From the NCBI RefSeq assembly GCF_963921235.1, contig NC_086102.1:161324001-161388000 (forward strand): a DNA stretch of 64,000 bases. The letters are read 5' to 3'. The stretch comes from Mobula hypostoma (taxonomy: Eukaryota). Below are positions 7,367-64,000 of this stretch, piece by piece (the stretch's first letter is position 1; every line of letters begins with the position of its first letter). The translations under genes and the position numbers were made by a program. Under the pieces are notes generated by a model. It saw only the letters and a list, made by a program, of their open reading frames with translations, did no database searches and was not told where the DNA came from.

Positions 7367-7655
7367 TGTAGCGGTGTGCTACACACAGTGCTAAAATAAC
7401 AACACGTAGTCGGTGAGTTGCAGTTGCGAAAAAAAGAGGTTTATGCAAACTTTGTGGCCTCCTTTAAAGCCTTCCTGTTCCCGCCCTCCCCGGGCGGGAC
7501 TGCTGTGGGGAATGCATATTCGCAGACCCTTCCCGCGCGCGGGATTTTCCCTCTGCTGGTGAAGATGGCCTGGCGCCCTTTTTGGGGCCGGCCTCTCTGC
7601 CAGCGCGCGCTGTTTTGTGAGCCGGTTCGAGTGCGCTGGAAAGTGGGTCACCACA
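7367..7655 (-). repeat. 3' LTR of the Gypsy element
   Basis: 289 bp, TGTAG...CCACA; roughly 90% identical by eye to 11407-11694. Confidence 0.95.
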
Positions 7656-7671
7656 TAACCACCGCCCCCCC
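7656..7671 (-). other. Polypurine tract
   Basis: Minus strand GGGGGGGCGGTGGTTA immediately before the 3' LTR. Confidence 0.75.
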
Positions 7672-7749
7672 AGAACCGGCGATACATCCCCCAATGTCCA
7701 CAGTCTGGATCGGCCTCTGTTTGGGAGGTCTGCCTCTGCGCCCCGGTGC

Positions 7750-10700
7750 CTGAGCCCGGACCGGTTGCGCCAAGTCCACATGGGCCGGTTTGAGTCGGTC
7801 CACCGTGAAAACCTCCTCTCTCCCCCCAATGTCCAGCACGAACATGGACCCGTTGTTCCTGATCACCTTAAATGGCCCCTCGTAGGGCCGCCGTAGCGGT
7901 GCCCGGTATCCGCCCGGTCGTACAAAAAGAAACTTACAGTTCTGCAGGTCTTTGGGTACGCAGGTCGGGCTCTGTCCGTGCTGTGAAGTGGGTACGGGGG
8001 CCAGGTTACCGAGCCTCTCAAGTAGTCTGTCCAGGACTGCTGCGGGTTCCTCCTCTTGCCCCCTTGGGGCCGGTATGAACTCTACTGGGACTACCAGGGG
8101 TGCTCCGTACACCAACTCGGCCGACAAGGTGTGCAGATCCTCCTTGGGCACCGTGCGGACTCTGAGCAGGACCCAGGGAAGTTCGTCCACCCAGTTAGGC
8201 CCTTCCAGGCGGGCCATGAGAGCCGACTTCAGGTGACGGTGGAAACGCTACACTAGTCCGTTTGACTGTGGGTGGGAGGCAGTTGTGTGGTGTAGCTGTG
8301 TTCCTAAAAGGCTGGCCATAGCTGACCACAGGCTGGAGGTGAACTGGGCACCCCTGTCGGAGGTAATGTGGGCTGGTACCCCGAAGCGTTCTACCCAGGT
8401 TGCGATCGGTGCTCGGGCGCAGGATTTGGAGGTGGTGTCGTTGAGCGGGACCGCCTCTGGCCATCTGGTGAACCGGTCTACGATAGTTAGGAGGTACCGC
8501 GCTCCTCGTGACACTGGCAGGGGCCCCACGATATCCACATGAATGTGTTCGAACCTCCAGCGGGTGGGTTCAAACTGCTGCGTCAGAGCCTTGGTGTGCC
8601 GCTGCACCTTGGCCGTTTGGCACTGCATGCACGTTTTGGCCCATTCACTGACCTGTTTATGACGTCCATGCCAAACAAACCTGTTGGAGACCAGCCGGAC
8701 GGTTGTCCTGATGGAGGGGTGCGCTAAGTTGTGAATGGAGTTGAAAACTCGCCGGCGCCAGGCTGCCGGGACGATGGGGTGGAGTTGGCCGGTAGCTACG
8801 TCACACAGTAGAGTCCTCTCACCTGGGCCTACGGGGAGGTCTTGGAGCTGCAAACCGGAGATCTCAGTTCTGTAACTAGGGATCTCATCGTCTGCCTGCT
8901 GTGCTTCTGCCAGCGCTGTATAGTCCACCCCCGGGACAGGGCCTGTATGGTAGATCTGGATAGTGCGTCCGCCACGACATTGTCCTTTCCCGAGACATGC
9001 CGGATGTCCGTCATGTATTTGGAGATGTAGGACAGATGTCGCTGCTGGCGGGACGACCAGGGATCATACACCTTAGTGAATGCAAAGGTAAGCGGTTTGT
9101 GGTCTGTGAACGCGGTGAAGGGCCTACCTTCTAAGAAGTACCTGAAATGCTGGATTACCAGTTATAGTGCCAATAGCTCCCGGTCGAAAGCACTGTATTT
9201 GAGTTTGGGTGGTCGTAGGTGTTTGCTGAAGAATGCCAGGGGTTGCCAGCGATCCTCGATGAGTTGTTCCAGCACTCTACTGACTGCTGTGTTGGATGCG
9301 TCCACCGTGAGGGCAGTAGGAACATCCATTCTGGGGTGCACTAGCATCGCGGCGTTTGCCAAGGCTTCTTTGGTTTTAACGAAAGCGGCTGCGGCCTCTT
9401 CGTCCCAGGTAATGTCCTGCCCTTACCCGACATTAGAGTGAACAAAGGGGCACATGATTCGGGCTGCTGAGGGGAGGAAACGGTGGTAGAAATTCACCAT
9501 ACCCACAAATTCCTGAAGGCCTTTGATTGTGTTGGGTCGGGGGAAGTGGCGGACCGTGCCTACCTTGGCGGGCAGAAGGGTTACCCTGTCTTCAGTAATC
9601 CTGTGGCCCAGGAAGTCGATGGTGTCGAGTCCAAACTGGCATTTGGCCGGGTTGATTGCAAGACTAAATTCGCTCAGTCGGACGTAGAGTTGACGGAGGT
9701 GGGACAGATGTTCCTGATGACTATTGCTGGCTATGAGGATGTCGTCCAAATAGATGAATGCAAAGTCCAGGTCGCGTCCCACCGCGTCCATTAGCCGCTG
9801 GAATGTCTGTGTGGCATTCGGAGCGATTCGAAAAGGCCGAACGGGGTGGTGAGTGCTGTTTTGGGGATGTCGTCTGGATGTACCGGGATTTGATGGTATC
9901 CCCGGACGAGGTCTACCTTGGAAAAGATCCTTGCGCCGTGTAGGTTTGCTGCAAAGTCTTGAATGTGTGGCACAGGGTAGCTGTCTGGCGTTGTAGCCTC
10001 GTTCAGTCTGCGGTAGTCGCCGCATGGTCTCCAGCCCCCCGTTGCCTTGGGCACCATGTGCAGGTCCATGGGCTGTCGGACCGTCGTATGATCCCCAATT
10101 CCTCCATCTTCTTGAACTCCTCCTTCGCCAGTCGGAGCTTGTCCAGGGGAAGCCTTCGAGCACGGGCGTGGAGGGGTGGTCCCTGGGTCGGGATGTGGTG
10201 CTGTACTCCATGTCTGGGCATGGCTGCCGTGAACTGCGGTGTCAGTACTGATGGGAAATCCGCCAGGACCCTGGTGAATTCGTCGTCGGACAGCGTGATG
10301 GAGTCCAGGTGTGGGGCTGGCAACTTGGCTTCACCCAGGGAGAATGTTTGAAAAGTCTTGGCGTGGACTAGTCGCTTCCCTTGCATTTGACCAGCAGGCT
10401 GTGAGCTCGCAGAAAATCCGCCCCAAGGAGTGGTTGGGCCACGGCGGCCAGTGTGAAGTCCCACATGAACCGGCTGGAGCTGAACTGTAGCCGCACTGTG
10501 CGGGTGCCGTAGGTCTGTATTGTGCTGCCATTTGCGGCCCTCAGAGTGGGTCTCGGTTCTCTGTTGCAGGTTTCATAACTCATTGGAGGTAAAACGCTGA
10601 TCTCCGCTCCCGTGTCGACCAAAAAGCGGCGTCCCGACTGCTTGTGCCAGACATACAGGAGGCTGTCCTAATGGCCAGTCGCCGTAGCCATCAGCGGCCT

Positions 10701-11365
10701 GGCGTTTCCTGGGAATTTGCAGGGTGGTCTACAGCGGCGGTGGTAGAAGCACCATTGTTCATTGGGCTCCTCACTCCCGTCGCCGGGTTTTGTAGGCTCT
10801 GCTGCGGGGCCTGGTCTTGTCTGCCGTTGGACATGTGGCTTGGTGATCTGTGCGACGGACGCCCCTCTCTCCTTCTTGGCATTCCACAGCACATCTGCCT
10901 GGGCCACCACCTTCCGTTGTCGCTGAAATCTGCGTCGGACAGCAGCAGGCATATGTCCTCCGGCAGTTGCTCTAGGAACGCCTGCTCAAACAAGAGGCAG
11001 GGTTTGTGTCCTTCAGCCAGGGCCAGCATTTCGTTCATTAATGCCGACGGCGGCTTGTCTCCCAGACCATCCAGTTGCAGGTAAGCAGGCAGCTCGCTCG
11101 CACTGTGAGAGTCCAAAAGTCCTTATGAGCAGGGCTTTGAATGCTGTGTATTCGCCATCCTCCGAGGGCGACTGTATAACCTCCTTAATTTGTGCAGCTG
11201 TCTCCTGGTCGAGGGAGCTCACCACATAGTAGTAACGAGTGAAATCCAAGGTTATCTGTCGAATGTGGAATTGGGCTTCTGCTTGTTTGAACCATAGGCG
11301 AGGTCACAGCATCCAGAAGCTTGGCAGTTTTAACGAAACTGCGTGAACAGATGTGGCCTCGGTCA
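7750..11365 (-). pseudogene. Frameshifted gag-pol of the Gypsy element
   Basis: Domains split across ORFs 11013-11249, 10691-11116, 10368-10622, 9791-10069, 9423-10211, 9162-9362, 8248-8928, 7648-8217. Confidence 0.88.
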
Positions 11366-22764: not shown

Positions 22765-23520
22765 TAGAACATAAGAAATAGCAGCAGGAGTAGGCCATCT
22801 GGCCCATCGAGCCTGCCTTGCCATTCAATATGATCATGGCTGATCGGTCCGTAAACTCAGCTCCATCTACCTGCCTTTTCTCCATAACCCTTAATTCCCT
22901 TACTATGTAAAAACCTATCTAACTGTTTCTTAAATATATTTAGTGAAGAAGCCTCATCTGCTTCCCTGGGCAGAGAATTCCTCAGATTCACCAGTCTCTG
23001 GGAAAAACAGTTTCTCCTCATCTCCGACCTAAATCTTCTCCCCTGAATCTTGAGGCAATGTCCCCTAGATTTAGTCTCACCTACCAATGGAAACAACTTT
23101 CCTACTTCTATCTTATCTATCCCTTTCAAAAGTTTGTATGTTTCTATAAGATCCCCTCTCATTCTTCTGAACTCCAGAGAGTATAGTCCCAGGCGACTCA
23201 ATCTCTCCTCATAGGTTAACCCTTTCATCCCTGGAATCAACCTGATGAACCTCCTCTGCACTGCCTCCAAAGCCAGTGTATCCTTCCTCAAGTATGGAGA
23301 CCAGAACTGGAGACAGTACTCCAAGTGCGGCCTCACCAGTACCCTGTACAGTTGCTCTTGAATTCCCTGCTCTTGAATTCAATCCCTCTAGCAGTGAAGG
23401 CCAGCATTCCGTTTGCCTCTTAATAACTGTTGTACCTGCAAGCCAACTTTTTGCGATTCATGAACAAGCGCTCCCAGGTTCCTCTGCACAACATCATGCT
23501 GCAATCTTTCCCCATTTAAA
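22765..23520 (-). mobile_element. CR1-like LINE 3' fragment
   Basis: ORF 22857-23336: RPHLEYCLQFWSPYLRKD...LYSLEFRRMRGDLIE. Confidence 0.9.
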
Positions 23521-23889
23521 TAATAATCTGATAATCTATCAGGTGGCAGGCCTTTCATCAGAACAGGGAAAAATAGAAAATTAATTTTAAGTTGCAGGGA
23601 GGGATGCTTAGGATATATAGAATATCTATGATAAGGTGATGCAAAAGTTACCACAAGAATAAATTGTAGAAGCATCCTGTTCAAATGTATTAATGGGGAA
23701 GATGGAGGATGATATTATTAACAAAGAATCATGATGTTTTGCAAACAGCATGGCTGTGATCCAGCAGGACAGGCTGTGCTAATGGATAATGTATTATGGA
23801 TAATACTAAATGTGTGTTATTGATAAATCTAACATCAATGATCAGAGATGACTTCTAGCAGAAATAGTTCTGAAACAGATAAAGAACAT

Positions 23890-24300
23890 GAGCTACCTGA
23901 AGGTGGAGAATTTGATACCAAGTCTTGCAGGTTGCAATGTGCCCTATCAGAAGGTGAGGTGCTCTTCCTCAAGCTTGCATTTTGCCTTGTTATAACAGTA
24001 CAGGAGGCCACTGACTGTTTTTAGTTGCCAGATTGCTTTTAGTTGCCAAATTAATGTAGCAGGCAACAGGATGCTCATGGTTGCCTCTGTAGATTGAATG
24101 AAAAGGCTCTGCAAAGCTGTCAGCCAATCTGCATTTGGCTCTTCCAATGCAGAGTTGACCACATTACCAACACAGAATGCAGTACATTCGTACATTAGTA
24201 TGGAAGAAATGTAAGTGAATTGCTGCCCTGGATGGTGGGGAGGGTACAAGTGAAATAACAGATTTTGCATCTCCTATATGGTTACAAAGAAAAGTAAGAG
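23890..24300 (-). mobile_element. Penelope-like element GIY-YIG endonuclease remnant
   Basis: MYCILC..GQLCIG.AKCRLAD and LLYCYNKAKCKLEEEHLTF in broken frames. Confidence 0.65.
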
Positions 24301-24369
24301 AGTGCCTCGTGGGGATGGATGAGCAGAAAAGTAAGATGCCTAACAAATGAGAGGAAGATGTACAGTGTC

Positions 24370-24580
24370 ACAAGCAGAAGAAAATCTGCAGATGCTGGAA
24401 ATCCAAAACACTGGAGAAATTCAGCAGGCCAGGCAGCGTCTTTGGAAAAGTTCAAACTGTCATTGTTTCAGGCCCTTCACTGATGCAGGGTCTTGACCCG
24501 AAACGTCGACTGTTTACTGCTTTCCATAGATCTTGCTTGGACTCCTGAGTTCCTCCAGCATTTTGTGTATATTGCTGAAG
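24370..24580. mobile_element. Fold-back element with mutated hammerhead core
   Basis: CTGATGC-AGGGTCTTGACCC-GAAA-CGTC-GACTG at 24480 between inverted arms. Confidence 0.65.
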
Positions 24581-24839
24581 ATATGCAGTATATGGTTCTG
24601 GAATCACGTTGGAACAGTCAAAAATGATAAAGAATGATTGATAGAATGTGGAGGCTGGAGAGGTGGAAGGTAAGGATTAGAGGACCTTTGTTTTGCTCTG
24701 TTCAGGAGGTTAGGTATAAGGAAAGGTGTGAACTACAGTTGAGGTGTGGTTAAGCGTTCTCTTCTCAATGGCTGAGGGCTGAGGGGAAGCGATGCTTCAA
24801 GTAGAAGGTAGACAATTCAGAAGCACCAGTGTGGAACAC

Positions 24840-25085
24840 CAGTTGTTTTACTTCTTCACTTCCCATCACCCAGGAACCCAAACAGTCTTACCAAGTGAAG
24901 TACCAATTCACTTCCTCTTCTTCCAGTCTAATTTACTATATTCAGTTTCCATTATGTAATCTCGTTTACATTGGAGAATCAAAGTGCAGATTGGTTGACT
25001 GCTTTGTGGACCATCTGTGTTCACCCTCTAGGAGCAACCCCGAGCTTCCAGTTGCCTGCTACTTTAATTCTTCATGCCATTCCAT
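24840..25085 (+). mobile_element. Penelope-like GIY-YIG remnant; resumes at ~26870-27000 after CR1 and SINE insertions
   Basis: LIYYIQFPLCNLVYIGESKCRL...ELPVACYFNS in ORF 24829-25110. Confidence 0.75.
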
Positions 25086-25119
25086 GCTCACTTTTTTATT
25101 TATTTATTGATTAATTGAT

Positions 25120-26615
25120 TGAGATAGAACATAGAATAGTACAGCACAGTACAGGCCCTTTGGCCCACAATGTTGTGCTGACCCTTAAACCCTGCCTCCC
25201 ATATAACCCCCCACCTTTAATTCCTCCATATACCTGTCTAGTAGTCTCTTAAATTTCACTAGTGTATCTGCATCTGACTCAGGCAGTGCATTCCACACAC
25301 CAACCACTCTCTGAGTAAAAAACCTTCCACTAATATCCTCCTTGAACTTCCCACCCCTTTCCTTAAAGCCATGTCCTCTTGTATTGAGCAGTGGTGCCCT
25401 GGGGAAGAGGCGCTGGCTGTCCACTCTATCTATTCCTCTTATTATCTTGTATACCTCTATCATGTATCTTCTCATCCTCCTTCTCTCCAAAGAGTTAAGC
25501 CTTAGCTCCCTTAATCTCTGATCATAATCCATACTCTCTAAACCGGGCAGCATCCTGGTAAATCTCCTCTGTACCCTTTTCAATGCTTCCACATCCTTCC
25601 TATAGTGAGGCAACCAGAACTGGACACAGTACTCCAAGTGTGGCTTAACCAGAGTTTTACATCGCGACTCTTAAACTCTATCCCTCGACTTATGAAAGCT
25701 AACACCCCATAAGCTTTCTTAACTATGCTATCTACCTGTGAGGCAACTTTCAGGGAGCTGTGGACAGGTACCCCCAGATCTCTCTGCTCCTCCACACTAT
25801 CAAGTATCCTGCCATTTACTTAGTACTCTGCCTTGGAATTTGTCCTTCCAAAGTGTACCACCTCACACTTCTCCGGGTTGAACTCCATCTGCCACTTCTC
25901 AGCCCATTTCTGCATCCTATCAATGACTCTCCGCAATCTTCGACAATCCTCTACACCATCTACAACACCACCAACCTTTGTGTCATCTGCAAACTTGCCA
26001 ATCCACCCTTCTACCCCCACATCCAGGTCGTTAATAAAAATCATGAAAAGTAGAGGTCTCAGAACCGATCCTTGTAGGACACCACTAGTCACAACCCTCC
26101 AATCTGAATGTACTCCCTCCACCACGACCTTCTGCTTTCTGCAGGCAAGCCAATTCTGAATCCACCTGGCCAAACTCCCCTGGATCTCATGCTTTCTGAC
26201 TTCCTGAATAAGCCTACCACCTGGAACCTTGTCAAATGACTTACTAAAATCCATGTAGATCACATCCACTGCACTACCCTCATCTATAATGCCTGGCCAC
26301 CTCCTCAAAGAACTCTATCAGGCTTGTTAGACACGATCTGCCCTTCACAAAGCCATGCTGACTGTCTCTGATCAGACCATGATTCTCTAAATACCCATAG
26401 ATCCTATCTCTTAGAACCTTTTCCAACAGCTTTCCCACCACAGACGTAAAGCTCACTGGTCTATAATTACCCGGACTATCCCTACTACCTTTTGTGAACA
26501 AGGGGACAACATTCGCCTCCCTCCAATCCTCTGGTACCACTCCCATGGACAGCGAGGACATAAAGATCCCAGCCAGAGGCTCAGCAATCTCTTCCCTATA
26601 CAGCATGGAATAGGC
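25120..26615 (-). mobile_element. CR1-like LINE RT fragment, comparatively well preserved
   Basis: ORFs 26280-26639, 25820-26308, 25185-25637: NYRPVS, YMDFSKSFDKV, QGSVL, KFADDTK. Confidence 0.92.
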
Positions 26616-26619
26616 TGAG

Positions 26620-26860
26620 CCACACCACCCAGCAATCACCGATTTAACCTTAGACTAATCACGGGATGATTTACAGTGAGCAATTACCCTACCAACCACT
26701 ATGAATTTTGGACTGTGGGAAGAAACTGGAGCACTCGGAGAAAACACACAAATTCCAAGGGGATCAACTCCTTACAGAGGACCCTGGAATCAAATTCTGA
26801 ACTCTGATGCCCTGAGCTGTAATAGCATCGAGCTAACCATCACACTTCTGTGGCACCCAT
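26620..26860 (-). mobile_element. V-SINE/HE1-like SINE
   Basis: GGACTGTGGGAAGAAACTGGAGCAC..GGAGAAAAC-type conserved core; recognised by pattern only. Confidence 0.5.
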
Positions 26861-49285: not shown

Positions 49286-49336
49286 ACAAAAAGCTTCAAG
49301 ACAAAATTGAACAACAGATCGAAATGGAAGTGAGAG
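49286..49336 (+). CDS. TTN: Titin short exon (exon 47 homolog)
   Basis: TGCAG|AC...DKKLQDKIEQQIEMEVR G|GTAATA; matches the human motif RIEQEIEMEMK as recalled; 51 nt. Confidence 0.88.
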
Positions 49337-50561
49337 GTAATATTTTTATTATTATTTGATGAATTTGCTAAATAGTTCTTGGAATACTTTGACCCAACTA
49401 TATTCATTTACTTCAGTATTTTGCCATCTGAATAAGCTATTTTACAGTTTGAAATGTCAAAATTGCATGTTGTTTGTTTCAATCTGATTTGTTTAAAAAT
49501 CAGATTTCTGTTTTTCATTCGGATTGTCGGATAAAAATTCATTAACATCAATATTTACTTTACAGGCATTATTTATTTACAGGAATTAACCATTGTTAAT
49601 TCCCCATTGTTAAGCTAAATTTCAGTGTAGAATTGCTTATTAAAATTGACAAAGCACAAATGAAATCTATGAGTATATCTGATAATGAAGGGTACAATGA
49701 AAAGTGTTTGAATGTACTGTCAACAATTTAATGTTTAATGACTGAATCCTAGAAGTGTACATATTAATATTTTATTTCCTAATTCTGTAGTTTCATCAGA
49801 ATTTTGTTCTTCTGAGTTCCTAATGAGCTCAACAAAAAGAATTGTACCTCATATTTTAGGAAATTGCAGCAATATTTTATTAAAGGATATTTAATTAGAA
49901 TAGCATCTATTCATATATTCATTTTCTTTCATTTAATCGACTCATACACTTACACTGGCTTGCAGATAGTAGTATGTATTCATGTATGCTGGCTTTTTTG
50001 CATAACGTTGTTAATCTAGCAACTGTATTAGTTCGAATAAACGCCTTCTCATGCAATTTATGAAGAATTATAAATGAATTTGTCTGTATTAAAATTCAAA
50101 TCTATGCTTGTCAAACTGGCTGAAAAGTGTATCTACTACCAAAAGGAGCAGAAAGGGCGTTTATTCTGCTGTCTGCAAGTCAGGTAAGAATTTGTAATAA
50201 TCTAGATATACCCAAATCATTACAGAGACTGATTTTACTTTTTGAAAAACCTCAATTTCGTCATGAGATCACTTTATGCTTTTTTCAAAATACACATTCT
50301 AATATGATTTTTGACAAGAAATTGCTACAGTCTGAAGAAAGAACAAAGAACGAGCGATTTTCCTGCTCAGAATCTTTAAACAGAAAATGGTCTTGCGTTT
50401 ATTCGAACAAATATGGTGAGTGCATTTTTTACAGTAATTGTGAATGCTGATGCATAAAGTTTGTCATTTCATGTTTCATATTTGTATTAAATTCAATTTT
50501 TAATAAGTTTTAAACTGATTTCGAAGAAACCACTCAATTCATTTTTTCTTTTTTTCTACAG

Positions 50562-53500
50562 AATTATTTTTTGATGATGGCAGTGGATGTCTGGAAAGCA
50601 GAGAAAACCTGCGAGATGCATTTTCTGATGCTGAAGATTATTTAGATCAGGGTCTTGTTTCTGCTAGACGTTGTGCAAGCAGAACCTCTTCTGTAGGTTC
50701 ATGGTCTGAAAATTTCAGGCCATCATTTACAGAAAAGTTGAAATTCAAATCTGTAATGGAAGGAGAGCAAACTACTTTTAAATGTAAAATGGTAGCCAGC
50801 CCAGTGCCAAAAGTAGCATGGTTTCATAACAACAGACCTATTCGTAAAGATTCAAGAAAGATTATTAAAACAGAAAGCACAATGCACATTCATAGTTCAA
50901 GTTTGGAAATCAATAACGTAGAAGAGAAAGATTCTGGAAGTTACAAAATATTTGCAATAAACTCAGAGGGATCGGCAGAATCAACTGCATCTTTACTTGT
51001 TGCACTTAAAGAGGAGCAAAATGAAAACTATCTGAGTTTTGTGAAAAGATCTGTGCTGGCTCACAGAAGTGTAGACTCCTTAGTTAAAAATCGAAATGCA
51101 AGACTTAAAGTTGATCTTAGACATGTCGGGTCTCCCTTTGATAAAAAACATGAGATTTATGGAGCTTTGCAAAAGAAGCCAAGTACTAGAAGCAGATTGG
51201 TGCGTACTATGTATTTTGAAAGTCCATTTACTGCAACTAAACATAAAGATCTTGCTGTTAGTAAGTCTGCTAAGGTATACTCACCTAGGTTATGTGGAAT
51301 GATTCTCGACAAAGAGAGCTTGATTGATGAAGACATTAGGATTAAACTGCATCTTTTACGTGAAGCTAAAAGGAAAAAGAGATTTTCTCTTGCACTGTCT
51401 GAAGCTTCATTTGACCTAGGAACAACAACTGAAGACTACAGCCATAGTTATTTAGACAGGGAGCGCAGCAGAAGTGTGGGAGACCTTGACTGCATGAATT
51501 GTGAACATGGTAAATCTTACTTAGTGCAAGAGCAGATACAGTCTTCTGGTGAATACGTCCAGAAGCAACCTCTTGAATTTCAACAAAAAATGGAACAGAT
51601 AATAGGACTTCCTGCAGGGAAAAGAGAATTAAAAAGTACCACTGGAGAATATATAATTGAAGAATCTTCTGGAACAATAGGTACAAACTCATTAAGAGAG
51701 CAATTCCTGAAAGGTGGTCCATCCCAAGAAACAGAAGAATTGCATGAAAATCAATATTGGTTGGAAGCAGAGGAATCTGGTGAATGTTATCTTCAGAAAG
51801 ACTATGTTACAAGAAAAGAAGCAAAGAGTCAACTTTGTGAAAAACCACATGTACCTACTGATCAACTGTTTGGAGAATATATTAGTGTGCAGAAGGATTT
51901 ACAATCAAAACATTTGAGAGAGACATGTGATGTTTTTATATCTGGAATCAATAAAGCACAGGCATTCAGGGAAACTGAGGTAATGAAACAAGCAGCACAA
52001 TTTGCAGATAGTGAGTGTGCAGAAATTTTATTGAAGGAAAAGGAGATTTCAACACCAGTAAAACAAACTCAGCTAGAGATAAAAGAATCTGAAAATAAAT
52101 ATAAGCTCAAGAAAAATATTGGTGTAATTTCCAATAAGAGGACTGAAAGTTTGCAGGCCTCACTTGCAAGGAAAACTGAATATTTTCATTCTCTGTTTGA
52201 CCACTCTAAAGCAACAGAAAAATATGAATCTAGTTTCACTGAAAAGGAAGACATTACAAGAGAGTATACACAAAATCTGATTCCTTCTTCCTTTCCAGAT
52301 AAAAACATTTCAGTCCTTGTCAGTACACCTTTGGATGCTAATGCTGTTGAAATAAATAAAACCTCAGGTAAATGTGAAACCAAAGAAAATCCTGCTATTA
52401 CTTATGACAAATTAACTGGAAGCATCTTCCTAAAGCAGATGTCTGGATTTGATTGCAGAACTGTTGACCAAACAAAATCTGCTTCCAAAGAAAATGAGGC
52501 AATAAGAATCATCGATATAAATGAAAATGTGCTGCAGAATGAAGGTAAAATTAACAATGATCCCCAGACACTTATGCCCTCTACTTTATCAGAGAAGAAA
52601 GAAATTTCAAGTTTTATTAGTTCCTTGATTAAAGATGCACCGGAAGATGTAAAACACATTCCATATAAAAGTCAGGAAATAAACTATGAAATAACTGTGG
52701 ATGCATGGCCTGAAAGATGCTTGAGAAATCAAAATGATTTACTAGTACAGAAACCAGGAGTTGCTCATGAAATATCTGATCACACTCCATCAGAGATGAT
52801 AGATTTTGATGATATCAATCAGAAAGAAACCCAATATGAAGAAGAGATTACAGATTCTACCCATTTAATGAGGCATTCTCCTTTGACAGCAAAGACAAGA
52901 GAAGCATCAGCCATTTTTAGGCCAGTGATAAAGCAATTTCCGGGGGAAATAAAGCACCCTCCAAAAGAGTCTGAGGTTCATGAAGAAGATGAGCCAGCAT
53001 CTGAACAAAGTTGCAGAAATTTTATTCACGTGGAAAAGTGCCGTCCAGAAGCAAGATCTGAAGATGGCCATGAAATTCAGATGGCTGATCAATCCAAGTT
53101 AGCAGTAAAACAAGTAGGTGTGATTGATGTGCCTGAAATTAGTCCAAATGAACAGTATGAAGGCAAGGTTAAAGATTTCACTTTAATTTTGGAACCTTCT
53201 GATTCACAGAACAAACATACATTCCTAAAAGAAACAGCAGCTGAAATGAGGGAACCTCCATATAAATCTGAAGTTAATGAAGGTGATACGAAACATCCTG
53301 ACCACTTTGCTGGTAGTTTTGTTAGTGCAATGAGAGAGCTTGTAACAGAAAAATCTGAAGAGGATATTGAAACATTCAGTATTTGCACCCCTGTGGTTAA
53401 AAGTGCATTCCAAATAATAAAGCCGTCTTTACCTGCTCGAAAAGACGTGTCAACTCCTTTAAATACACGTGAACCCACGGAAGACTATAATTCAGCTAAT

Positions 53501-54422
53501 ATGCAGCAGTGTGGAAATTTGTTCCAAGCACAAAGAGGATTTTTGCCAGGGAAACTTGATGAAAATCATCAAGTGTACTTCCAATCCTTAAAGGCAGGAA
53601 AAGAAGCTGAGGTGATTTATGAAGATAAAATAAGACAGAAAGAATCACAATCTGAAGCAGCAGTTCTAAATTCCACATGGATGGTGAAGACTTCCTCTTT
53701 ATCAGAGGACAAGGAAACTTCAGTTTGTACAAGCTCCTTGAAAAAACAATCACCAGTAGACACAAAAGATTCTCCTTGCAACTTTGAATTTGAGGAAGAC
53801 CACGTGAAAGCTTTGAAAAATTTTACCAGCATTGACAAAGAAGTTCCAGCGGAGAAACTGGAAGATGTCAAAATAATACCCCATAAATCGGCACTCACAG
53901 AGACAGCAATGATTAATAGATCTGAAATTGGTCAGAAACATCAATGGGAAATTGAAGGCCCATCTTATACTGTGAACCTCAACCAAACAGTGGAAACACC
54001 TAACTTAAAAGATCAAAAACAGGCTCTAGAATCATTCAGTTCATTGATAAAAGAGGCACCAGAAGAAGAGCAACATAATAAATGTATTGATCTGAAAGAA
54101 TCCCCAGAAGCAGAGACTCATTCCAATCAACTTGACAACCATTGTCCGCCAGTAATTGTTCACTATATTACATCTCCTAAAATAAAACAAGGAGCTCCTT
54201 GTGTGCTTGAATGTCAATTTCATGGGAACCCACAACCTACTGTAATTTGGTACAAGGATGAGCGTCCAATTCCACAAAATAGGGATTATGATATCTACTC
54301 CACAGAAAATAAATCCTTGTTGACTATTAGCTATACACGCAAAGAACATGAAGGAATTTATTCATGCGTGATATTCAACCAGTATGGTACTGCAACAACA
54401 ACTTGCGTCCTTACTTTACAAG
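50562..54422 (+). CDS. TTN: Titin novex-3, 5' part (Ig, ~1000-aa unique sequence, Ig)
   Basis: Poly-T/CTACAG acceptor; ELFFDDGSG...RDAFSDAED...KDSGSYKIFAINSEGSAESTASLLV matches novex-3 as recalled; 3861 nt with no stop; donor CAA G|GTAAAA. Confidence 0.92.
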
Positions 54423-54520
54423 GTAAAATTCATTATACTTCATTTTGTAATTATTTTTTTAAAGTATGTTGCAATAAGATAACTGAAGATCATAAATTAT
54501 TATTTTTTTTTACTTTTCAG

Positions 54521-57500
54521 ATACTGGACCATTTGAAGAACCTTTGAAAACATTTAATATGCATGTGATAGAAACACCAGAGGACTATGCTGAAAAAGAA
54601 TATCCGGACCATCAGGTTGAAAAGGAAGTTGAGTTTTATTTTCCACCAGCTCCACTAATAAAATCCACACTGCAAATACCAAATGTTTCAGTACCCCCAC
54701 CACGTCCAGTAAATTTGTCTACTCTATCATCTGTTGTTGAAATTAAAATAACTGCTCCAACTCCAACACCAGAGCGAGATGAAAAAAAGAGAGAATTATT
54801 TCAATTAGATGAGGTTGAATGGACAGGTTCACCTCAAGAACCCTCCTCTCAATCTACAAAACATAAATTTAAGTTTTCATTTGATGTAATTTGTGAACCT
54901 CCAGAAGTTGTAAAAGAGTTGGATAAGATTTGTTGTACAGAAGGAGAAACAGTGATGTTTGAATGTGTAATTTCTGGTGAGCCAGCACCTGTTGTTACGT
55001 GGATTCAAAATGATAGAGTTTTAACTTGTGATACAAGCAAACACCAATTTGAAGAGAGTGGAGGAACTTATAGATTGTATATTAATGATGTTTCAGAATC
55101 TGATGTGGGGAACTATACGTGCATAGCTAAAAATAAGGATGGGGAAGCACAGAGTACATCTAGTCTCACACTAGAACCTGTAATGCATAGTTTCATTTAC
55201 CATCTGAAAGATATTGAGTTATCTGAGGATGAAACAGAATCACCTGTTAGTAAAATGGGCCAGGGTGAAGATGTTGAGCAGCAATGTCAGAAGGAAAACA
55301 GCAATAATTCTCTTCCATTAAATTCAGAGAAACGAATCATTCATGTTGATTCTGAAGTTGGTGATTTTTCTCCAACCACTGCAGATGAATTTTCAAGCAT
55401 TGTTTCATCTTTAAAGGAAGAGAGCGGTGAAGTTGTATTGGACTCATTGAGTTCTTTTGATAATGAACTTTTAAGTAAAAGTTTACCTTTAAGAGAAGAA
55501 AGTAATGAAATAGTTGCAGAATCAGTGACTAATTTTGTTGATGATATTTCAAATAAATGTCCTTCTTTAGAAGTAATTAATACTACAATAATAAGAAATT
55601 CAGATGTGACAGGGTCAAAAGCAGAGAAAATAACAGAAGAAACCTGTTCTGTCAGCCAATATTTACGCGATCTTGATAAAAGTCGTAAGTTATCAGAAGG
55701 TCAGGAGATGAATAAAGAAATAGAAGTAAAAGACATCAAGTGTGCATTTTTAGAAGAAGTTCATGAAGATAGTTTACTTTCAGAAGGTGGAATTAAGCAA
55801 GTTGTTGAAAGTAATAAAGGAGAAGTAGAAAAAATTACCTCAGAGATGGAGTTAAGTCATTCAGTGTTTCAGAAAAATATTTGTGATATTGGTGAAGATT
55901 CAGTGGAAACATTTTCTAAGAAGGATGAGCCGAGTGAAAATATTTCCATTGCACAATATCTCCTTACTGCAAGAGAGGAAGAAGCACCAATTCATGATTG
56001 GGAAAACAATGAGGCCTTTCAGCATGATGAGTCTGGGATTACTTCAATGGAAGTTGAAGAAGTAACATTTTCTGCTGTTTATGACTATTATAATCAAAAT
56101 GAAGAATGGACACGGTCCCTTTCTCCTGAATCTGAAATGTCAATTGAAATTAGTAGCACAATTAGCGATGAAATAGCAGAGAATGAAAGATTTTATACAC
56201 CACCCTTGGCTTCAGAAAATTTTAGATCTGTTGTATCTGCAGAGTCATTTCATACACCACTTCAGTCACCTGGCTTTGTGACTCCAGAAGAAAGATTGCC
56301 ATCACTTAACGCTGTGGGTAGATCTCCTAATTATGAACTAGAAAGATTTTACACGCCATCAGACCATTTTAGATCACCAATAGATGAGGGTATTGAAACA
56401 ACACCTATTGAATGTTCAAGACTTTCTACTGAAGAGCAAAGATTGGAGGCATTTTCAACTCCTCCACAAGAAGCTGAAGCTAAAGGAAATGAAATGCCTC
56501 CAGCATTTATTAAACCCCTTACTAGGAAAAGGATTCATGAAGGAGGCTCACTTACATTTATTACAGAAGTAATTGGTTGCCCAATTCCAGATGTGAAGTG
56601 GTATAGAAGAAAATTGTTATTAGAGCGAAATCACAAAATTAGAGTAGAAAGAGAAGGAAATCTGTGCATTTTAGTGATCGATAACATGCAAAGAGAAGAT
56701 GAAGGAGAGTATATTTGCAATGCTGTTAACGTTGTAGGAGAAGCGAAAAGTATTGCTCAGGTGGATGTTTTAGCACAAGATGCAAAGTTAGTTGCATTGC
56801 CACCACCAGTGACACATCAACATGTGATAGAGTTTGATGTACAGCAAGAACAAACATCAAGATCTCCTTCACCTCAAGAAATTCTTCTGGAAGTTGAACT
56901 TGATGAACATGAAGTGAAGGAATTTGAAAAACAGATTAAAATTATTACAATTCCTGAATTCACTCCTGACAATAAAAATATGATCATCTCACTAGATGTC
57001 CTTCCTGTGATGATTGCTGATGAGTATAATGTAGGCTTGACAGCAAAAGAAAATGGAGATGTGAAAATTGATTTAGAAGTCACTGAAATGCCCCCACGGT
57101 TTACTAGTTATATTTTTGATCTTGATATTCCAGAAAACACTGATGCAGTATTTGAATGTTCTGTGACAGGTATTCCTCCTCCAGAAATAACATGGTTCAA
57201 AGATGATTTGCATATAACTGTGGATGGTACGAAATACATTAGAAAAGATAATTCAAATCATAGTCTTAAAATAACAAATGTTTGTCCTTCTGACAATGGC
57301 ATATACAGTTGCAAGTTAGTGAATAGTGTTGGAGAAGCAACATGTAGAGGATATCTTGCAGTAACAAACTCAAACATGGCACTAACAAAAGCAAGTGGTA
57401 GAGCTGTAGCTGCTTTATCACTGGCTGGTGCTCATGAACGTTCACAGGAATTAGATGTTGTTGTTGGTGATTCTTCGCCAGATGTCAATCATAGTTCAGA

Positions 57501-57999
57501 ATTTGAGGTTGAGTTTGAATTTGAGCAAGGCAGAGATGAATCTCAGAAATCCGTGAAACTTGTTGCTGTAACAGAGAAAGGAAATAAGGAAAAAGGAGAA
57601 AAATGTGTGAATATCAATTTTGATGTATTTGCTGAACCTGCCAAAGATGAGACAATTCAGTTTAAAGCAGAGGCTTCTGAAACATGTTCATTTGAATTTC
57701 AAGTAACAGAGATTCCACCCAAGTTTGTGATTTCACTTCTTGACTGCAACACAGCCATAGGGAACACAGCATCTTTTCAATGCTATGTAACTGGTACTCC
57801 AAAACCAAGTATAAATTGGTATTTCAATGACAGAATACTTGAAGGTACCAATTACCTAACTGGGGAAAAAGATTCTGGGCAACATTATCTGAACATTGTA
57901 GGTGTTACAGAAAGTGATGCTGGAGTCTACAAGTGCAAAGCCGTTAACAAAGCTGGAAATGCAGTTACATGTGCTGTTTTAAAAGTATTTTATGCATAA
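54521..57999 (+). CDS. TTN: Titin novex-3, 3' terminal part ending in a stop codon
   Basis: TTTTTTACTTTTCAG acceptor; contains novex-3 signatures ITSMEVEEVTF, EMPPAFIKPL, VALPPPVTHQHVIEFD; four Ig domains; TAA at 57997-57999. Confidence 0.92.
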
Positions 58000-58097
58000 A
58001 ATACTTCTGAATGTCCTTTACATACTTAGAATAATGAAGTATTTTGATATTTATCATATGTAGCATGTTTAGGGATGTGTTAATTTCTGACACAGTA

Positions 58098-58103
58098 ATT
58101 AAA
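58098..58103 (+). promoter_or_regulatory. Candidate polyadenylation signal (ATTAAA) for the novex-3 transcript
   Basis: First hexamer I found after the stop, followed by a T/GT-rich tract. AATAAA alternatives at 59066 and 59585. Confidence 0.3.
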
Positions 58104-61100
58104 TTGATTTTAACATTACAAATTTTATTTGGTATTGCTAAAATGTTGAAAAATTTACCCTGGAGTAGTGTATCAGTAGGAAAGCTGATATTTAGATGTT
58201 TAAAACATTAATCAAGTTAAAATACTGAACATTTTGGATTAAGGACATGAAAAGGTCTGGCTAGTGAGGCTAGTTTGTTGAAAATATTGATAACTCAAGA
58301 GATTTTGCATGAAGCAGCTAAACCATTAATGTTTAACCTCTTAAACTGTGATTATATTGCATCTGGTCACAATGAAGGTTACAGAATTACAGAACTTCCT
58401 TTACAATAACTGTAACAAAATTTTACTTTTATATACACTTGATCTTTTTTTCAATTTATGTTGTATATTCACCATCAGACGTAACTTCCTCCTTTTTAGT
58501 TCTTATAGTGTGAGTAAAATATAAAGACATACAGTTGCATTGATGCAAATTAGTTCTATCATTGCTCCTCTATTTCCTGTTCAATATTATGATGTATTTA
58601 AAAATACCAGGGCAAACTGAATAGGTTGATAGAAGCTTTATTGGGACATTGTAGTTTAGGATGAGTAGACATAATTTCAAAATCAGAACCAGGTTTTTCA
58701 AAAAATGAATATAGAAAGACTAATACAAGCAGACATTAATAGAAGTTTGGAATCCTCATCTACAGATGGCAATTACTGTTAAGTCATTAAGTATAATACT
58801 CATAGTTTCTGTTATTGAAATTAATTAGTATCTAAATGTCAGAACAGACTTAACGGACTATTGGTTAATTACAGTTATTTTGTTCCTTTTTTCATTTGGA
58901 CGTAAGTATTATTTGAAACATCTATCATTTTAAAAACTTAAATGATTTAGGTTAGTTATGCTGAACTTAATATGACATTCTTCTGACAATATTTTATATG
59001 GATCATGAACCTTATTTATTTTAATCCATCTAAAGTATAAATTATTGCTTTATAGGGAAATACCAAATAAATCATTTGCTAATGTCTTTCACAACTACAG
59101 AATAATATATAAAAATCTAGTATCCTTGAGCTACATGAAAGTGACCTCTCAAATATTGTGTGTTGCAATTGGGAGAAAGATAAACCAAATTAAATTTCTA
59201 AAAAGGGTGCTAACTATCATAAGGCATTCTGAGATGGTCAGATTTCGAGCAGGTCAGAATCCGTGCCTTAGGATGGAATATTATAGATGCTTAAACATGA
59301 TTGTTTTGGTGGCTTTTAAGTATCAATCTGAAAAGTCTAATTCCAATAATTAGAAATAATTAAATTTTATCTACTCTCTCCTCATCTTCTTTTACCTTCC
59401 TTCCCATTTCTTAGCTAAAGTAGAAAAGAATCTATTCCCAGATTTCTACTGCTAGAAAGTGAAGAGTCCATTTGACTCTGCTTCACTTTCCAGCCTTCTA
59501 ATAAAAAGGTGTTTACCATTTCTGTCTTATCCTGTTACCTTCATAAATGAGGCAGGAAATTTGTTGTTGTGGAATCGTACATTAAATAAACAAATCTTGC
59601 CATTCTGTGCTTTAGTTCATTTAAAAACATATAATATTTCTAATAATCTACATGTTTAAAATTAGATTTATTCATTGCTTTTTGTATTACTTTATTGTTT
59701 TTGTTAATACATTTGTCCTGTCTTTAGACATTAGCAAGGTTCAGAGTCAAAAATGTAAACTTTGGTTCAGACTGAACTAATGTTTGCTGTTGGAGGAAGT
59801 TTATTAAAGGTCATGATGGAGTTTCGTAGGTACTGGGGGAATTATTAGTCTGGCAGTCAGACAGTAAAATATTTGATGAGTCCAGAGATTTCAAAAATAA
59901 TTTAATAGAGATTATTTCAAAGTGGAAATCTCCTCTTTGATAATCTTGCAAATAATAAAATTGTTTCTGCATCTTTATGAGTCAGATCATTGCAGATCAT
60001 TTTAATATTTACTTTCTAATCAGTTAATCTTACATTTTAAATTAAGTTATTTCATTGCATTGAGTCATTTTTGCACAAACTATATAAAATATGTGATATT
60101 TTAAAATTAACAAGCTTTAGTGGTTTGGATTCCGAAAGTTCATGGCCAATTTATTGAAGTTGTAAATTTAGAAAGCAGGTACCTTTCGTGACATCAGCAT
60201 GAGTATTTTAATAAGCACACTTCTAATGATAATCTCAGTATGGTAATCTAGTTGCTTGAAAGCATACATTGTTTCCTGTTTTATATGGCACATTTGACAT
60301 GATATTAAAGTGTGATTATTATTGCACCTGTTGCGAGGAACTGTTGAATGCTACAACTATTCATTCCTTCTGCAGGTTTCTATTGTTAGTAATTGTAGTT
60401 ATGTTTTATTTTACTGTGAACACTTATGTGTACGCAGCTCCTGGCTCTGTTGTCATGTAAATATACAGCTGGTATGCAAGATATAGTCTCTTTTGATTAT
60501 CCCACCACTGCTTAAGACAGAAACTTATACTAAGTTCTGGTTCCAAGGGTGGTAGCAGCTTCCTCTCGTGCTCCTGAACTAAGTGCTTTGATGTTTGCTT
60601 GTTGGGATAAATAGTTTAATTGTAAGTCAATACAGTGAATGTAATCTTGCACTTAATAACTGCAAATACTCCCGTTATGGATTGTTTGAGATCAGCCTGC
60701 AACTGTTGGCTGTTTTCTTGTACTATAGCTTGGAATTACTGATATCAATTTTAACATTTCATTGCTGTCTAGGTAAGAGAAGTTAACCTAAATCAGAGAT
60801 TTATAGGTAGCTTTCAGCTGTTTTGTAGACAATCAAAATTACAGCATTGATTTTGCTATCACCAGGTGCAATATATTCTTACAATATCATAGGAATACAA
60901 TATCTCTTGATGTGACTTAACAATCAAATTTTGATATATTTGATGAGAAATATGTATTTCACTGAATGAATAAAGCTTATATTAGAAATTACTTTTAAGT
61001 CTGTTGAAAATTTGTAGCATGCACTACATTTTTGTGTGATAGTAACACTATCATGAATGCCCTGGGCAATGATTCTAGATTTACAGAATGCCAGCCACTA

Positions 61101-61549
61101 CTAACAAACTTCAATCTATGTAGTTTCTTTTTTCCACTTTTGAGTCAGACATGCAAATATTGATCACGTATTGGATATTTTAATACCCAAGATAATTACG
61201 TGAAGACACAAATTTTGAATCAGTGAATTTGAATAAATGGTATGTTAAAACAATTTTAACGAAGTATGTTTTTATTTAAACTACTGTGGTGTTGCTAAAA
61301 TTGTTTTTAGGAAAAGTAAAACTTCCTTAATTTTCTGAGCTGATTCTATATACAGTGACATGCCTAGTACATATCTAGATTGAAGATAAATATTTAAAGA
61401 AGATTTATAGAATTTTAACCTTTTGGAGCAAAAGAAGCTTTCCACGAAGTGACATAAATAATTCTGGTGATTTTTGTTTGCTTTTCAATATTTAGCAGTA
61501 CTCACAATCAACATGCCTTCTAAACTTAAACATTTTATTTCTTACACAG

Positions 61550-63633
61550 AATTTTCTAGTTCTGTATTTATTGCTGCTGAGGATAAGAGGGAAGGTTTCT
61601 ACTTGAGTGAACTTAAAACATTTGAACTCAGCACTGAAATTCCTGTTCCGTTGAACATATTGGACAAAAAAATGATGCTGAGCTTTTAAAATCTGTGCCA
61701 GTATTCATCAAATGTATTTCTAAGATGGAGGTGGTTGTGGGAGATATAACTAAATTTTCTGCCACTCTTAGTGGGTTATCTGAACCCTCTATTCAGTGGT
61801 TTTATAATGGTAAAAAATTGACTCCTTCATTGAATTACAAGTTTGTTTATGCTAAGGATGAATGTAGTCTAATTATTCCTTACACAAAATGTATGGATGA
61901 AGGAGAATATACCTGTACAGCTACTAATGTGCTTGGTGAGACTTCATGTAGTGCATACCTAAAAATCAAGCTAAAGGATTTGGGAAATCAACTGCAAGAC
62001 CTCCAATGGCAAAACTTCCAGAAAAAAAGAGGAGTAGAGGAGCTATGATAGTAAAACAAACAAAAGCTTTCTTTGTATCTGGGGGTGAGGCACCACAGTT
62101 TTATAAATAATTTAAATCTTTGCAGTGCCTTAAAGACGTGCCTGCTAGATTTGAGTTTTTAGTTACAGGAAAGCCAATGCCAGATGTGCTTTGGTATAAG
62201 GGATAGTACCAGATCAGTCAGTGTGTGCATTACAACCTGAGTTACAACTCCAGTGGTTCTGGTTCACTAACTATCCATAATGCGCAGAAGGAGGATAGTG
62301 GCTGGGACTCCTGCAAAGCATTTAACTCATTTGGAGATGCAACTTGCACTGCAGAGAAAATTGTGATTACCAAGTAAAGAAGCACACCCAGACCAAGCAG
62401 AACAAACTGAATCCTTTGAAATGAAAATTGACAACTTGCTTTCTGAAGTCAAAACTGATCCTCTGCCAGAAAAATATCTCCCGTCTGTAACTCTACCTAT
62501 ACAGAGAAAGTGTTTACAATTGAAGAAAAAGAGCAGTGTGCAGTAATAAGAGTCTGATAATACTTTCAAACAGTTCAGTACTACAACAGACTGCGCAATA
62601 GTTGAAGATGGTTCTTTTGTCATTTTCGAAGCCATAAATACAGCAGTTTGTGAAAATAAATATGAACCAAAACTAACTTCAACTTCTGTGCAAGTTAAAG
62701 AAAACACAATGTCTATAGAAAGTACTAATATGCTAGAGTCTGCAGAAGAAGATTTTGTAATAGGGATCCAGAGGGACAGTTAGCAAGATTTCCATTGTTG
62801 CTTCAAGAAAAACAAATTATTGAAGAAGAATGCTCTTCAGATTTTAAGCTAGGTACAGTTGCAAAGCCAGCTGATAGGCTAGAAAAATTAGGCATCAGTA
62901 TCACTCCTGCAAAAAGGGCAGTAGAAGCTGTCAACATTGATGAAAGTAATTTGGATATGGGGAAGGATAGGATGGGAAGAACTGAACTAAAAATACAGAC
63001 TGAAGAGTTATTGCAATCTACAGTTACCCAGCAGTACCCAAAGAAAGCAGCACCTAGTTATAAAGGAAAACAGCAGCCAGTAGTTTCAGCAGATAAATCA
63101 ACATCGGGTGTATCAACTGAGGCTATATATCAGGAAACACAATCTCAACAACGTGTAGCAATGGCTAAATCAGAGGGTTTTTCTCAAGAATTTAAATCTG
63201 TAGAGTCAATTGGAAAAATGGAAGTTGTGAGTCATGTAAAAGATATTAGAGATGCAATATTTAGCACTGGTGCCCCTTCGCTGTCTGTTCTCGTCAAACC
63301 CTTGTATTTCTAAAATGAAAATGCCAAGCAAAACACTAATAAAAGGTACTATAGTCAATCCAATTATTATTAAAGGCCTTATTGATATCATCGCAGATGA
63401 AGGCAGCCAAGTGACATTTAGCACGTTGATAAAAGGAGTGAGAAGTGTAAATTGGTATATCAATGGGAAGAAAATTACTTCAAAAATTAGTTCAAATGTT
63501 TTCAGGATTTCGATGCATATTCACATAATCAACAAAGTACAGAAAGAAGAACATCAAGGAGAATATGTCTTTGAGATACTGATTGAAGCAAGAATAGCAA
63601 CTACTTCTGCAAAACTTACTGTTGTAATAAGAG
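61550..63633 (+). pseudogene. TTN: Pseudogenised titin N2B (cardiac) exon
   Basis: Begins EFSSS after a CAG acceptor. Three N2B-type Ig domains and the unique-sequence motif ARFPLLLQEKQ are recognisable but lie in different frames. In-frame TAA 62108 and TAG 62204 inside the second Ig; donor AGA G|GTTGGA at 63634. Confidence 0.88.
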
Positions 63634-64000
63634 GTTGGATTATGGGGATAAAACTTTATGAATATGAAATTCACAATCTAATCCATTCAACTGACAAAAC
63701 AGTTAACTTTCGTTTTTATTTTACTCTAATAAATTAATATGACTCAATCTTTTGTCCCACCACCCTTTTCCTTCTTTCTTTCCCATAATATTTTAATGGT
63801 AAGGAAGTAATTGTGTTACCGACTTGATATCAAAATACAATGCTGTCAAAGCTTGTTAAAACCACATTCTTTTTCCCCCACGAAATATGCATTATAAATG
63901 TTAAATCTTGACAGTATTGTTTAAAAAAAAACTTAATGTGAATTTAATACCCTTTATGTGATCTTCATATGCTCTTACTAACAATAACAAAAAGCACTTA

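Follow-up and report, generated by a model that had tools for sequence, protein, structure and literature searches.

A two-exon novex-3 unit in the titin gene of Mobula hypostoma and other cartilaginous fishes

In mammals, the titin gene (TTN) contains the novex-3 exon, which was reportedly described by Bang et al. in 2001. We analyzed the corresponding part of the gene in a 64,000-nucleotide (nt) stretch of the ray Mobula hypostoma (NC_086102.1, plus strand), called the window below, and all coordinates are positions in it. As judged from their sequence, two neighboring exons in the window, referred to here as exons A and B, are together orthologous to exon 48 of mammalian TTN (novex-3), a unit carried on two exons in cartilaginous fishes. 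The two exons are separated by a GT-AG intron of 98 nt in phase 1, and homologous introns occur in the other cartilaginous fishes examined. We consider it very probable that this arrangement is best explained as a two-exon novex-3 terminal unit in which exon A is spliced to exon B in the ordinary manner. A preliminary description of the same DNA had proposed that exon A, an in-frame piece with two Ig domains, could act as a substitute spring element in full-length titin; this proposal is weighed below. The features of the locus are as follows.

49286-49336, plus strand: exon 47 orthologue, 51 nt, phase 1/1, encoding (D)KKLQDKIEQQIEMEVR (blastn, translation, and boundaries cag/.../gtaata)
50562-54422, plus strand: novex-3 exon A, 3861 nt, 1287 codons, phase 1/1 (translation, Pfam)
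50720-51001, plus strand: Ig I18-like domain of exon A
51002-54145, plus strand: unique region of exon A, with a conserved segment of about 165 residues followed by a variable, charged segment of about 880 residues
54146-54421, plus strand: Ig I19-like domain of exon A
54423-54520, plus strand: GT-AG intron, 98 nt, phase 1, directly after the last strand of Ig I19-like
54521-57999, plus strand: novex-3 exon B, 1159 open codons, TAA stop at 57997-57999 (translation, Pfam); it consists of a linker with the conserved motifs VEIKITAPTPTPE and KHKFKFSFDV, and Ig domains at about 54898-55170, 56443-56727, 57073-57357, and 57718-57996
58098-58103, plus strand: candidate poly(A) signal ATTAAA, the sole candidate near the stop
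61498-63659, plus strand: remnant of the N2B exon (tblastn with intact shark and chimaera N2B frames)

Structure and identity of the novex-3 unit

Exon A is bordered by an acceptor (ctacag/AA at 50562) and a donor (CAAG/gtaaaa at 54422), and at each border a codon is split 1+2. The intron begins with GT at 54423-54424 and ends with AG at 54519-54520 (ttttcag/), which is preceded by a long T-rich tract. The preliminary description had placed a 98-nt GT-AG intron with a strong T-tract acceptor exactly after the second Ig domain, and both the splice sites and the phase were confirmed. The open frames of exons A and B differ, and the removal of the 98 nt fuses them through a GAT (Asp) codon; if the intron is instead read through, a stop codon is reached after 41 codons. 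With Pfam, I-set Ig domains were found at residues 53-146 and 1195-1286 of exon A, with about 1048 residues between them, and four more were found in exon B, so that the whole unit has six. The total coding size of the unit is 7340 nt and, owing to the 98-nt intron, it is not one uninterrupted exon. The stop codon of the unit (TAA, 57997-57999) is clear, and its poly(A) signal is known as a candidate ATTAAA; no AATAAA was found on the plus strand between the stop and position 59066.

The identity of the unit is indicated first by its position. Exon 47, which is the exon spliced to novex-3 in other vertebrates, lies upstream, the N2B remnant lies downstream, and titin Z-disc and I-band exons also lie upstream. 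Exon 47 is conserved to lizard and chimaera: its identity is 80% with a 54-nt exon of Varanus (L005, 3127-3180; blastn) and 91% with Callorhinchus, and its peptide matches a bat novex-3 isoform just upstream of exon 48. Furthermore, six Ig domains (I18-I23) and their inserts are reported for the published exon 48, along with a stop codon and a poly(A) signal (PMC13649281). In a 5614-residue bat titin isoform (Rousettus isoform X8), the novex-3 sequence forms the C-terminal end and is colinear with exons A and B. A library search with exon B returned orthologues as nested RefSeq models in the rays Mobula birostris and Hemitrygon akajei, in zebra shark and elephant shark, and in arowana, pipefishes, frogs, and a monitor lizard. 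The model of M. birostris shares 97% identity over exon A and 99% around the A/B junction, and exon A is 63% identical to that of a second batoid (L001). In all jawed vertebrates, the second Ig domain, the linker, and the third Ig domain align colinearly, and the two linker motifs are strongly conserved. The novex-3 identity given in the preliminary description, together with the division of the unit by a real intron, is thus upheld by the colinearity of the Ig domains and by the presence of the intron in other species.

In the annotation of the M. hypostoma genome, only a 1146-residue protein (P0245) is given for this unit; it starts from an internal methionine, Met13 of exon B (54559-57999), and no model joins exons A and B. 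Because only the exon B protein is annotated, exon A may be unannotated in this genome. Annotation pipelines often call novex-3 a separate nested gene, under names such as “unc-89-like,” “titin-like,” “obscurin,” or “uncharacterized.”

Distribution and age of the intron

Homologous GT-AG introns in phase 1 were found in four cartilaginous fishes: 98 nt in M. hypostoma, 101 nt in the second batoid (L001), 111 nt in the zebra shark Stegostoma, and 100 nt in the elephant shark Callorhinchus. The L001 sequence is a 9.2-kb genomic contig with about 80% nucleotide identity across 49868-58371 of the window, and the introns of the zebra shark and the elephant shark were located by mapping RefSeq proteins onto the DNA. 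In all four sequences, the junction codon is GAx, the intron lies right after the last Ig strand, and reading through it leads to a stop after 9-41 codons. The identity of the introns between the deep lineages is 55-61%, and their first ~11 nt are similar across lineages. RefSeq models join exon A to exon B in four species, i.e., M. birostris, Hemitrygon, Stegostoma, and Callorhinchus. In M. birostris, the gene spans 7695 nt and the coding sequence is 7452 nt, and by span arithmetic only, the excess of 243 nt fits an intron of about 100 nt plus an upstream intron of 146 nt.

These comparisons bear on a reading in which there is no intron at all and what mimics one is a frameshift due to faulty assembly or a novex-3 pseudo-exon in decay. 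The change of frame itself would fit such a reading, and nothing beyond it does. In four independent assemblies, the GT-AG sites fall at one and the same codon position; the open frames of the two halves extend over 1287 and 1159 codons, and both halves show purifying selection. Because the same intron, at the same place and in the same phase, is present in the DNA of three other species, a chance arrangement or an assembly slip is excluded. We therefore regard this reading as refuted by the cross-species comparison and give it practically no weight.

The preliminary description had suggested checking whether the intron exists in the novex-3 genes of other fishes; it is present in the cartilaginous fishes and absent in arowana and in a further fish-like contig. 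The unit is uninterrupted in these two sequences, in the Komodo monitor (from residue 25 on), and in the sea lamprey, and published tables give novex-3 as one exon in eight bony vertebrates. The intron is thus common to every cartilaginous fish examined and missing from every bony vertebrate examined. In the sea lamprey, the novex-3-like unit (L010, 5001-13526) is a single frame of 8526 nt and 2841 codons with five Ig domains, not six; the second Ig domain (I19-like) is lacking, as is the first half of the linker behind it. Because the site of the intron is therefore also absent, the lamprey cannot decide between gain and loss of the intron.

We lean toward an old intron that was later lost in bony vertebrates, over a gain in cartilaginous fishes, because the intron lies at a canonical domain boundary in the canonical phase and would be the 3′-most intron of the novex-3 transcript. 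The 3′-most intron of a transcript is the one most likely to be lost by a reverse-transcript-mediated process. The birth of the intron by tandem duplication of a splice junction was also considered and rejected: the start of the intron is unlike the start of exon B, and the intron's end resembles that of exon A over a short, T-rich stretch, a match taken as chance. We found no paper with a description of a two-exon novex-3, and the one cartilaginous-fish titin study that we consulted names only a “Novex-III exon.” The two-exon state in cartilaginous fishes and the one-exon state in bony vertebrates and lamprey provide a clean presence/absence character for the evolution of titin.

Splicing of exon A and the proposed spring element

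In the novex-3 isoform, exon 47 would be joined to exon A, the intron of about 100 nt would then be removed as an ordinary intron-defined short intron, and translation would continue into exon B and stop at the TAA at 57997-57999, with polyadenylation shortly afterward. The product would be the usual short titin, consisting of the part for the Z-disc and for the proximal I-band plus six Ig domains with unique inserts, and full-length titin would skip the whole unit of A and B. By homology with mammalian novex-3, a short titin (~650-700 kDa) of the Z-disc and I-band that has known binding partners, the product would presumably have the corresponding function.

To evaluate the splice sites, we used a crude, unbiased score and compared it across 12 neighboring Ig exons. 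The donor at 54422 scores 7.75 bits, which is inside the range of the neighboring titin donors. The acceptor of exon B scores 6.4 versus 0.7-4.4 for the acceptors of the 12 neighboring Ig exons, i.e., it is the strongest, and it lies 98 nt from the donor. These values are consistent with constitutive splicing of the intron in this ray. The ratio of nonsynonymous to synonymous substitution rates (dN/dS) in exon A was 0.04 (first Ig domain), 0.31 (segment of about 165 residues), 0.59 (variable segment), and 0.33 (second Ig domain), and the Ig domains of both exons are under purifying selection.

Several points weigh against this account. The annotation of the genome holds the exon B protein P0245 and no model of A plus B, so A-to-B splicing in this ray rests on homology. 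The poly(A) signal is the candidate ATTAAA only, and the donor at 54422 may have a minor alternative use. 

Transcript-derived fragments over the A/B junction were also sought, with a 200-residue query ending at 54421 against proteins of 110-350 residues, and none was found at E ≤ 1e-20. A regional protein search returned one orthologue, and the rest of the matches were Dscam noise.

One alternative use of the junction would be regulated retention of the short intron, giving either a shorter novex-3 that ends just past the second Ig domain or a transcript bound for decay. A stop follows soon after the junction in all four species, the size of the intron is steady near 100 nt, and its beginning is similar across lineages, all of which would suit such regulation. 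However, the read-through tails differ in both length (9-41 codons) and sequence, so there is no conserved retained-intron peptide, and the low intron identity between the deep lineages likewise speaks against it. Moreover, short introns with good splice sites are normally removed efficiently. We consider retention of this kind highly unlikely.

The second alternative is the spring element of the preliminary description, according to which the donor at 54422 bypasses exon B in full-length titin. In this ray, which lacks N2B, the donor would sometimes skip exon B and the N2B remnant and join a downstream phase-1 Ig exon, so that exon A would become an extensible Ig-unique-Ig cassette. In evolutionary terms, an ancient novex-3 intron would have been co-opted in rays without N2B, and a fraction of transcripts would run from exon 47 through exon A to the first intact exon past the N2B remnant, providing a replacement spring in cardiac titin. 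Some of the structural premises hold. Exon A has an acceptor, a donor, and a length divisible by three, as would a skippable internal exon, and the 3861-nt, 1287-codon piece, with both splice sites and phase 1 at both ends, is formally the in-frame unit that had been described. Its Ig domains flank a long unique sequence (1048 residues), as in an N2B-type element. N2B is also broken in this ray, as the proposal presupposes: by tblastn, the remnant changes frame at least five times and lacks about 470 residues. Finally, the annotation of this genome does not join A to B.

The unique region of exon A had been described as low-complexity and charged. It is charged (31% D/E/K/R, i.e., a charged fraction of 0.31), but it is not of low complexity, since the 20-residue Shannon entropy is 3.40 bits versus 3.3-3.55 for Ig domains. 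Its mean hydropathy of 0.410, compared with a boundary of 0.427, places it marginally on the predicted unfolded side of the charge-hydropathy boundary. In an AlphaFold model built from a shallow alignment of six sequences, the predicted local distance difference test (pLDDT) value was below 50 over most of the region, and the second Ig domain reached 64-83 in the same run. These predictions would be compatible with an extensible segment. Of the unique residues, the first ~165 show good conservation, unlike the other ~880.

The claim that exon A has the same architecture as N2B stands as a similarity but not as sameness, since N2B is arranged as Ig-Ig-unique-Ig, with three Ig domains. Intact N2B frames with three Ig domains each were found in the zebra shark (1321 codons; L009, 23446-27408) and the elephant shark (1135 codons; L008, 20833-24237). 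When the unique region of exon A was compared by BLASTP with these intact Stegostoma and Callorhinchus frames, no homology to the unique sequence of N2B was found (best E = 1.9).

The evidence from other species argues against the spring. In the zebra shark and the elephant shark, the same intron stands beside an intact N2B, and the RefSeq models of all four species join A to B, which is largely the situation that the preliminary description had named as contradicting its proposal. The proposed bypass of exon B is accordingly not borne out: the intron is ancestral and coexists with intact N2B. The intron predates the loss of N2B by hundreds of millions of years, which removes the evolutionary rationale for the spring. 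In the elephant shark heart, the N2B segment is expressed, and the only variants reported from PCR (polymerase chain reaction) across novex-I and N2B were those that carry or lack these two segments (PMC12241362). Exon A is not longer in rays than in the shark, and the strong rival acceptor is 98 nt away, compared with over 9 kb for the next exon that could be used. The symmetry of phase is generic in titin: 10 of the 12 neighboring Ig exons are 1/1, and 311 of the 363 human TTN exons are symmetric (PMC9222585). We consider that exon A has phase 1/1 because the intron sits at an Ig-domain boundary, as do nearly all titin introns, and this property does not mark it out as a special cassette. 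According to work on mammals, the novex-3 proximal unique region has many coiled coils and binds laterally at the Z-disc, and it is not a spring (PMC13649281). In view of these results, we regard the occasional bypass in this ray as highly unlikely, and we give its co-option as a replacement spring in rays equally little credence.

Exon 48′, complementary blocks, and comparison with known systems

Upstream of exon A, the window contains the orthologue of the alternative poison exon 48′ and a set of conserved intronic blocks, which were defined from inverted repeats and an alignment of eight species.

49955-50183, plus strand: conserved intronic blocks, i.e., block 0 (49955-49975), block 1 (50026-50050), and block 2 (50151-50183)
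50184, plus strand: donor-like CAG/GTAAG directly after block 2
50331-50415, plus strand: exon 48′ orthologue, 85 nt, acceptor CTACAG/, consensus donor ATATG/GTGAGT
50395-50413, plus strand: block 3, within the last 21 nt of exon 48′ and ending 2 nt before its donor
50416-50561, plus strand: intron between exon 48′ and exon A, 146 nt, which is the last part of intron 47 if exon 48′ is skipped

Exon 48′ was described by Chen et al. (2018; PMC5852582), and its size and position match 50331-50415. Joined to exon 47, it reads G+TC and then TGA, i.e., an immediate stop with the frame shifted. The exon hardly varies among ray, shark, chimaera, lizard, teleost, and lamprey. Its reading frame is not kept from species to species and is broken in L001 and Stegostoma, so that it is the RNA that is conserved, not a peptide. 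In three species, RefSeq models begin with the exon that ends at 50415; a conserved coding first exon was therefore considered and rejected on account of the broken frames, and the exon fits the poison exon 48′. The acceptor tract of the 146-nt intron is also conserved to lamprey.

The region 49940-50430 has about 70% identity among ray, lizard, and teleost, and within it three short blocks are 83-94% identical even to lamprey; by comparison, ray and lamprey share 66% identity in the first Ig domain, the coding part under the strongest constraint. Block 1 (50026-50044) and block 3 (50395-50413) can form 18 Watson-Crick pairs with one fixed mismatch in all eight species, and in lamprey there is one compensatory change, from C:G to T:A. 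An inverted 19-mer repeat of this quality did not occur in any of 200 dinucleotide shuffles. In an alternative arrangement, the complements lie in block 2, whose 5′ half (50151-50166) would pair with block 1 and whose 3′ half (50163-50183), beside the donor-like site at 50184, would pair with block 0. The minimum-energy fold contains the hairpin of blocks 0 and 1 with block 2 (z = −2.9). Because the blocks hardly vary, the evidence from covariation is thin. An Rfam scan of 49800-50700 returned no family, and our literature search found no paper that ties titin or novex to long-range RNA pairing. We propose the blocks as candidate competing RNA stems that might control the entry of transcripts into the novex-3 unit, which is a lead and not a result. 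If this is true, the mutually exclusive stems beside two donors would be a mechanism that sets the ratio of novex-3 to full-length titin, a ratio that has been linked to heart failure (PMC13649281).

Elsewhere in the window, titin introns hold G+C-rich retroelement remains with reverse-transcriptase and integrase-like frames, as well as reverse-transcriptase fragments of the long interspersed nuclear element (LINE) type, at 7400-11100 (mostly on the minus strand) and 22850-26650 (minus strand).

The closest counterpart of exons A and B is mammalian TTN exon 48. Both lie between exon 47 and the N2B exon, have six Ig domains with unique inserts, are colinear, including the motifs VEIKITAPTPTPE and KHKFKFSFDV, and close the titin reading frame with an in-frame stop. 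The sizes are similar, with 6077-8039 nt in eight bony vertebrates and 7340 nt here. Unlike the ray unit, which is cut by the phase-1 intron of about 100 nt after the second Ig domain (I19-like), the mammalian exon is not split, and an insert of about 1050 residues separates the first two Ig domains in the ray, versus roughly 350 in the bat isoform. The length of this insert varies about six-fold across vertebrate novex-3 sequences, from ~350 residues in bat and ~400 in monitor lizard through ~1050 here to ~1400 in zebra shark and ~2000 in pipefishes (P0129, P0126, P0095, P0103, P0246).

The N2B element (exon 49), the cardiac spring, resembles exon A in that Ig domains flank a long, charged, and probably unfolded unique sequence, in its location in the same part of the gene, and in its symmetric phase 1. 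The two differ in that there is no sequence similarity, exon A has two Ig domains and N2B has three, and in-series placement of exon A in A-band-anchored titin appears to have no support. Also unlike N2B, the first ~165 unique residues of exon A are conserved and match the region reported to bind laterally at the Z-disc.

Like TTN exon 48′ (PMC5852582), the ray exon 48′ is 85 nt long, lies in a strongly conserved stretch separating exons 47 and 48, and gives a stop straight after exon 47. Beyond that paper, the exon is traced here to cartilaginous fishes and lamprey, and the flanking complementary blocks found here are, to our reading, not described in it. A second acceptor 15 nt upstream, which gives the 85-nt and 100-nt forms, is AG in shark and chimaera and AC in this ray.

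Finally, the complementary blocks can be compared with the docking/selector RNA pairings of Dscam1 and with conserved complementary regions in human genes (PMC8052449). They differ from these in that they are known here from sequence alone, with a single compensatory pair (lamprey), and in that the controlled outcome would be the use of a poison exon, not a choice among coding exons. The likeness is that one upstream site (block 1) fits two downstream sites, each just 5′ of a donor, and that the blocks are far more conserved than the neighboring coding sequence.

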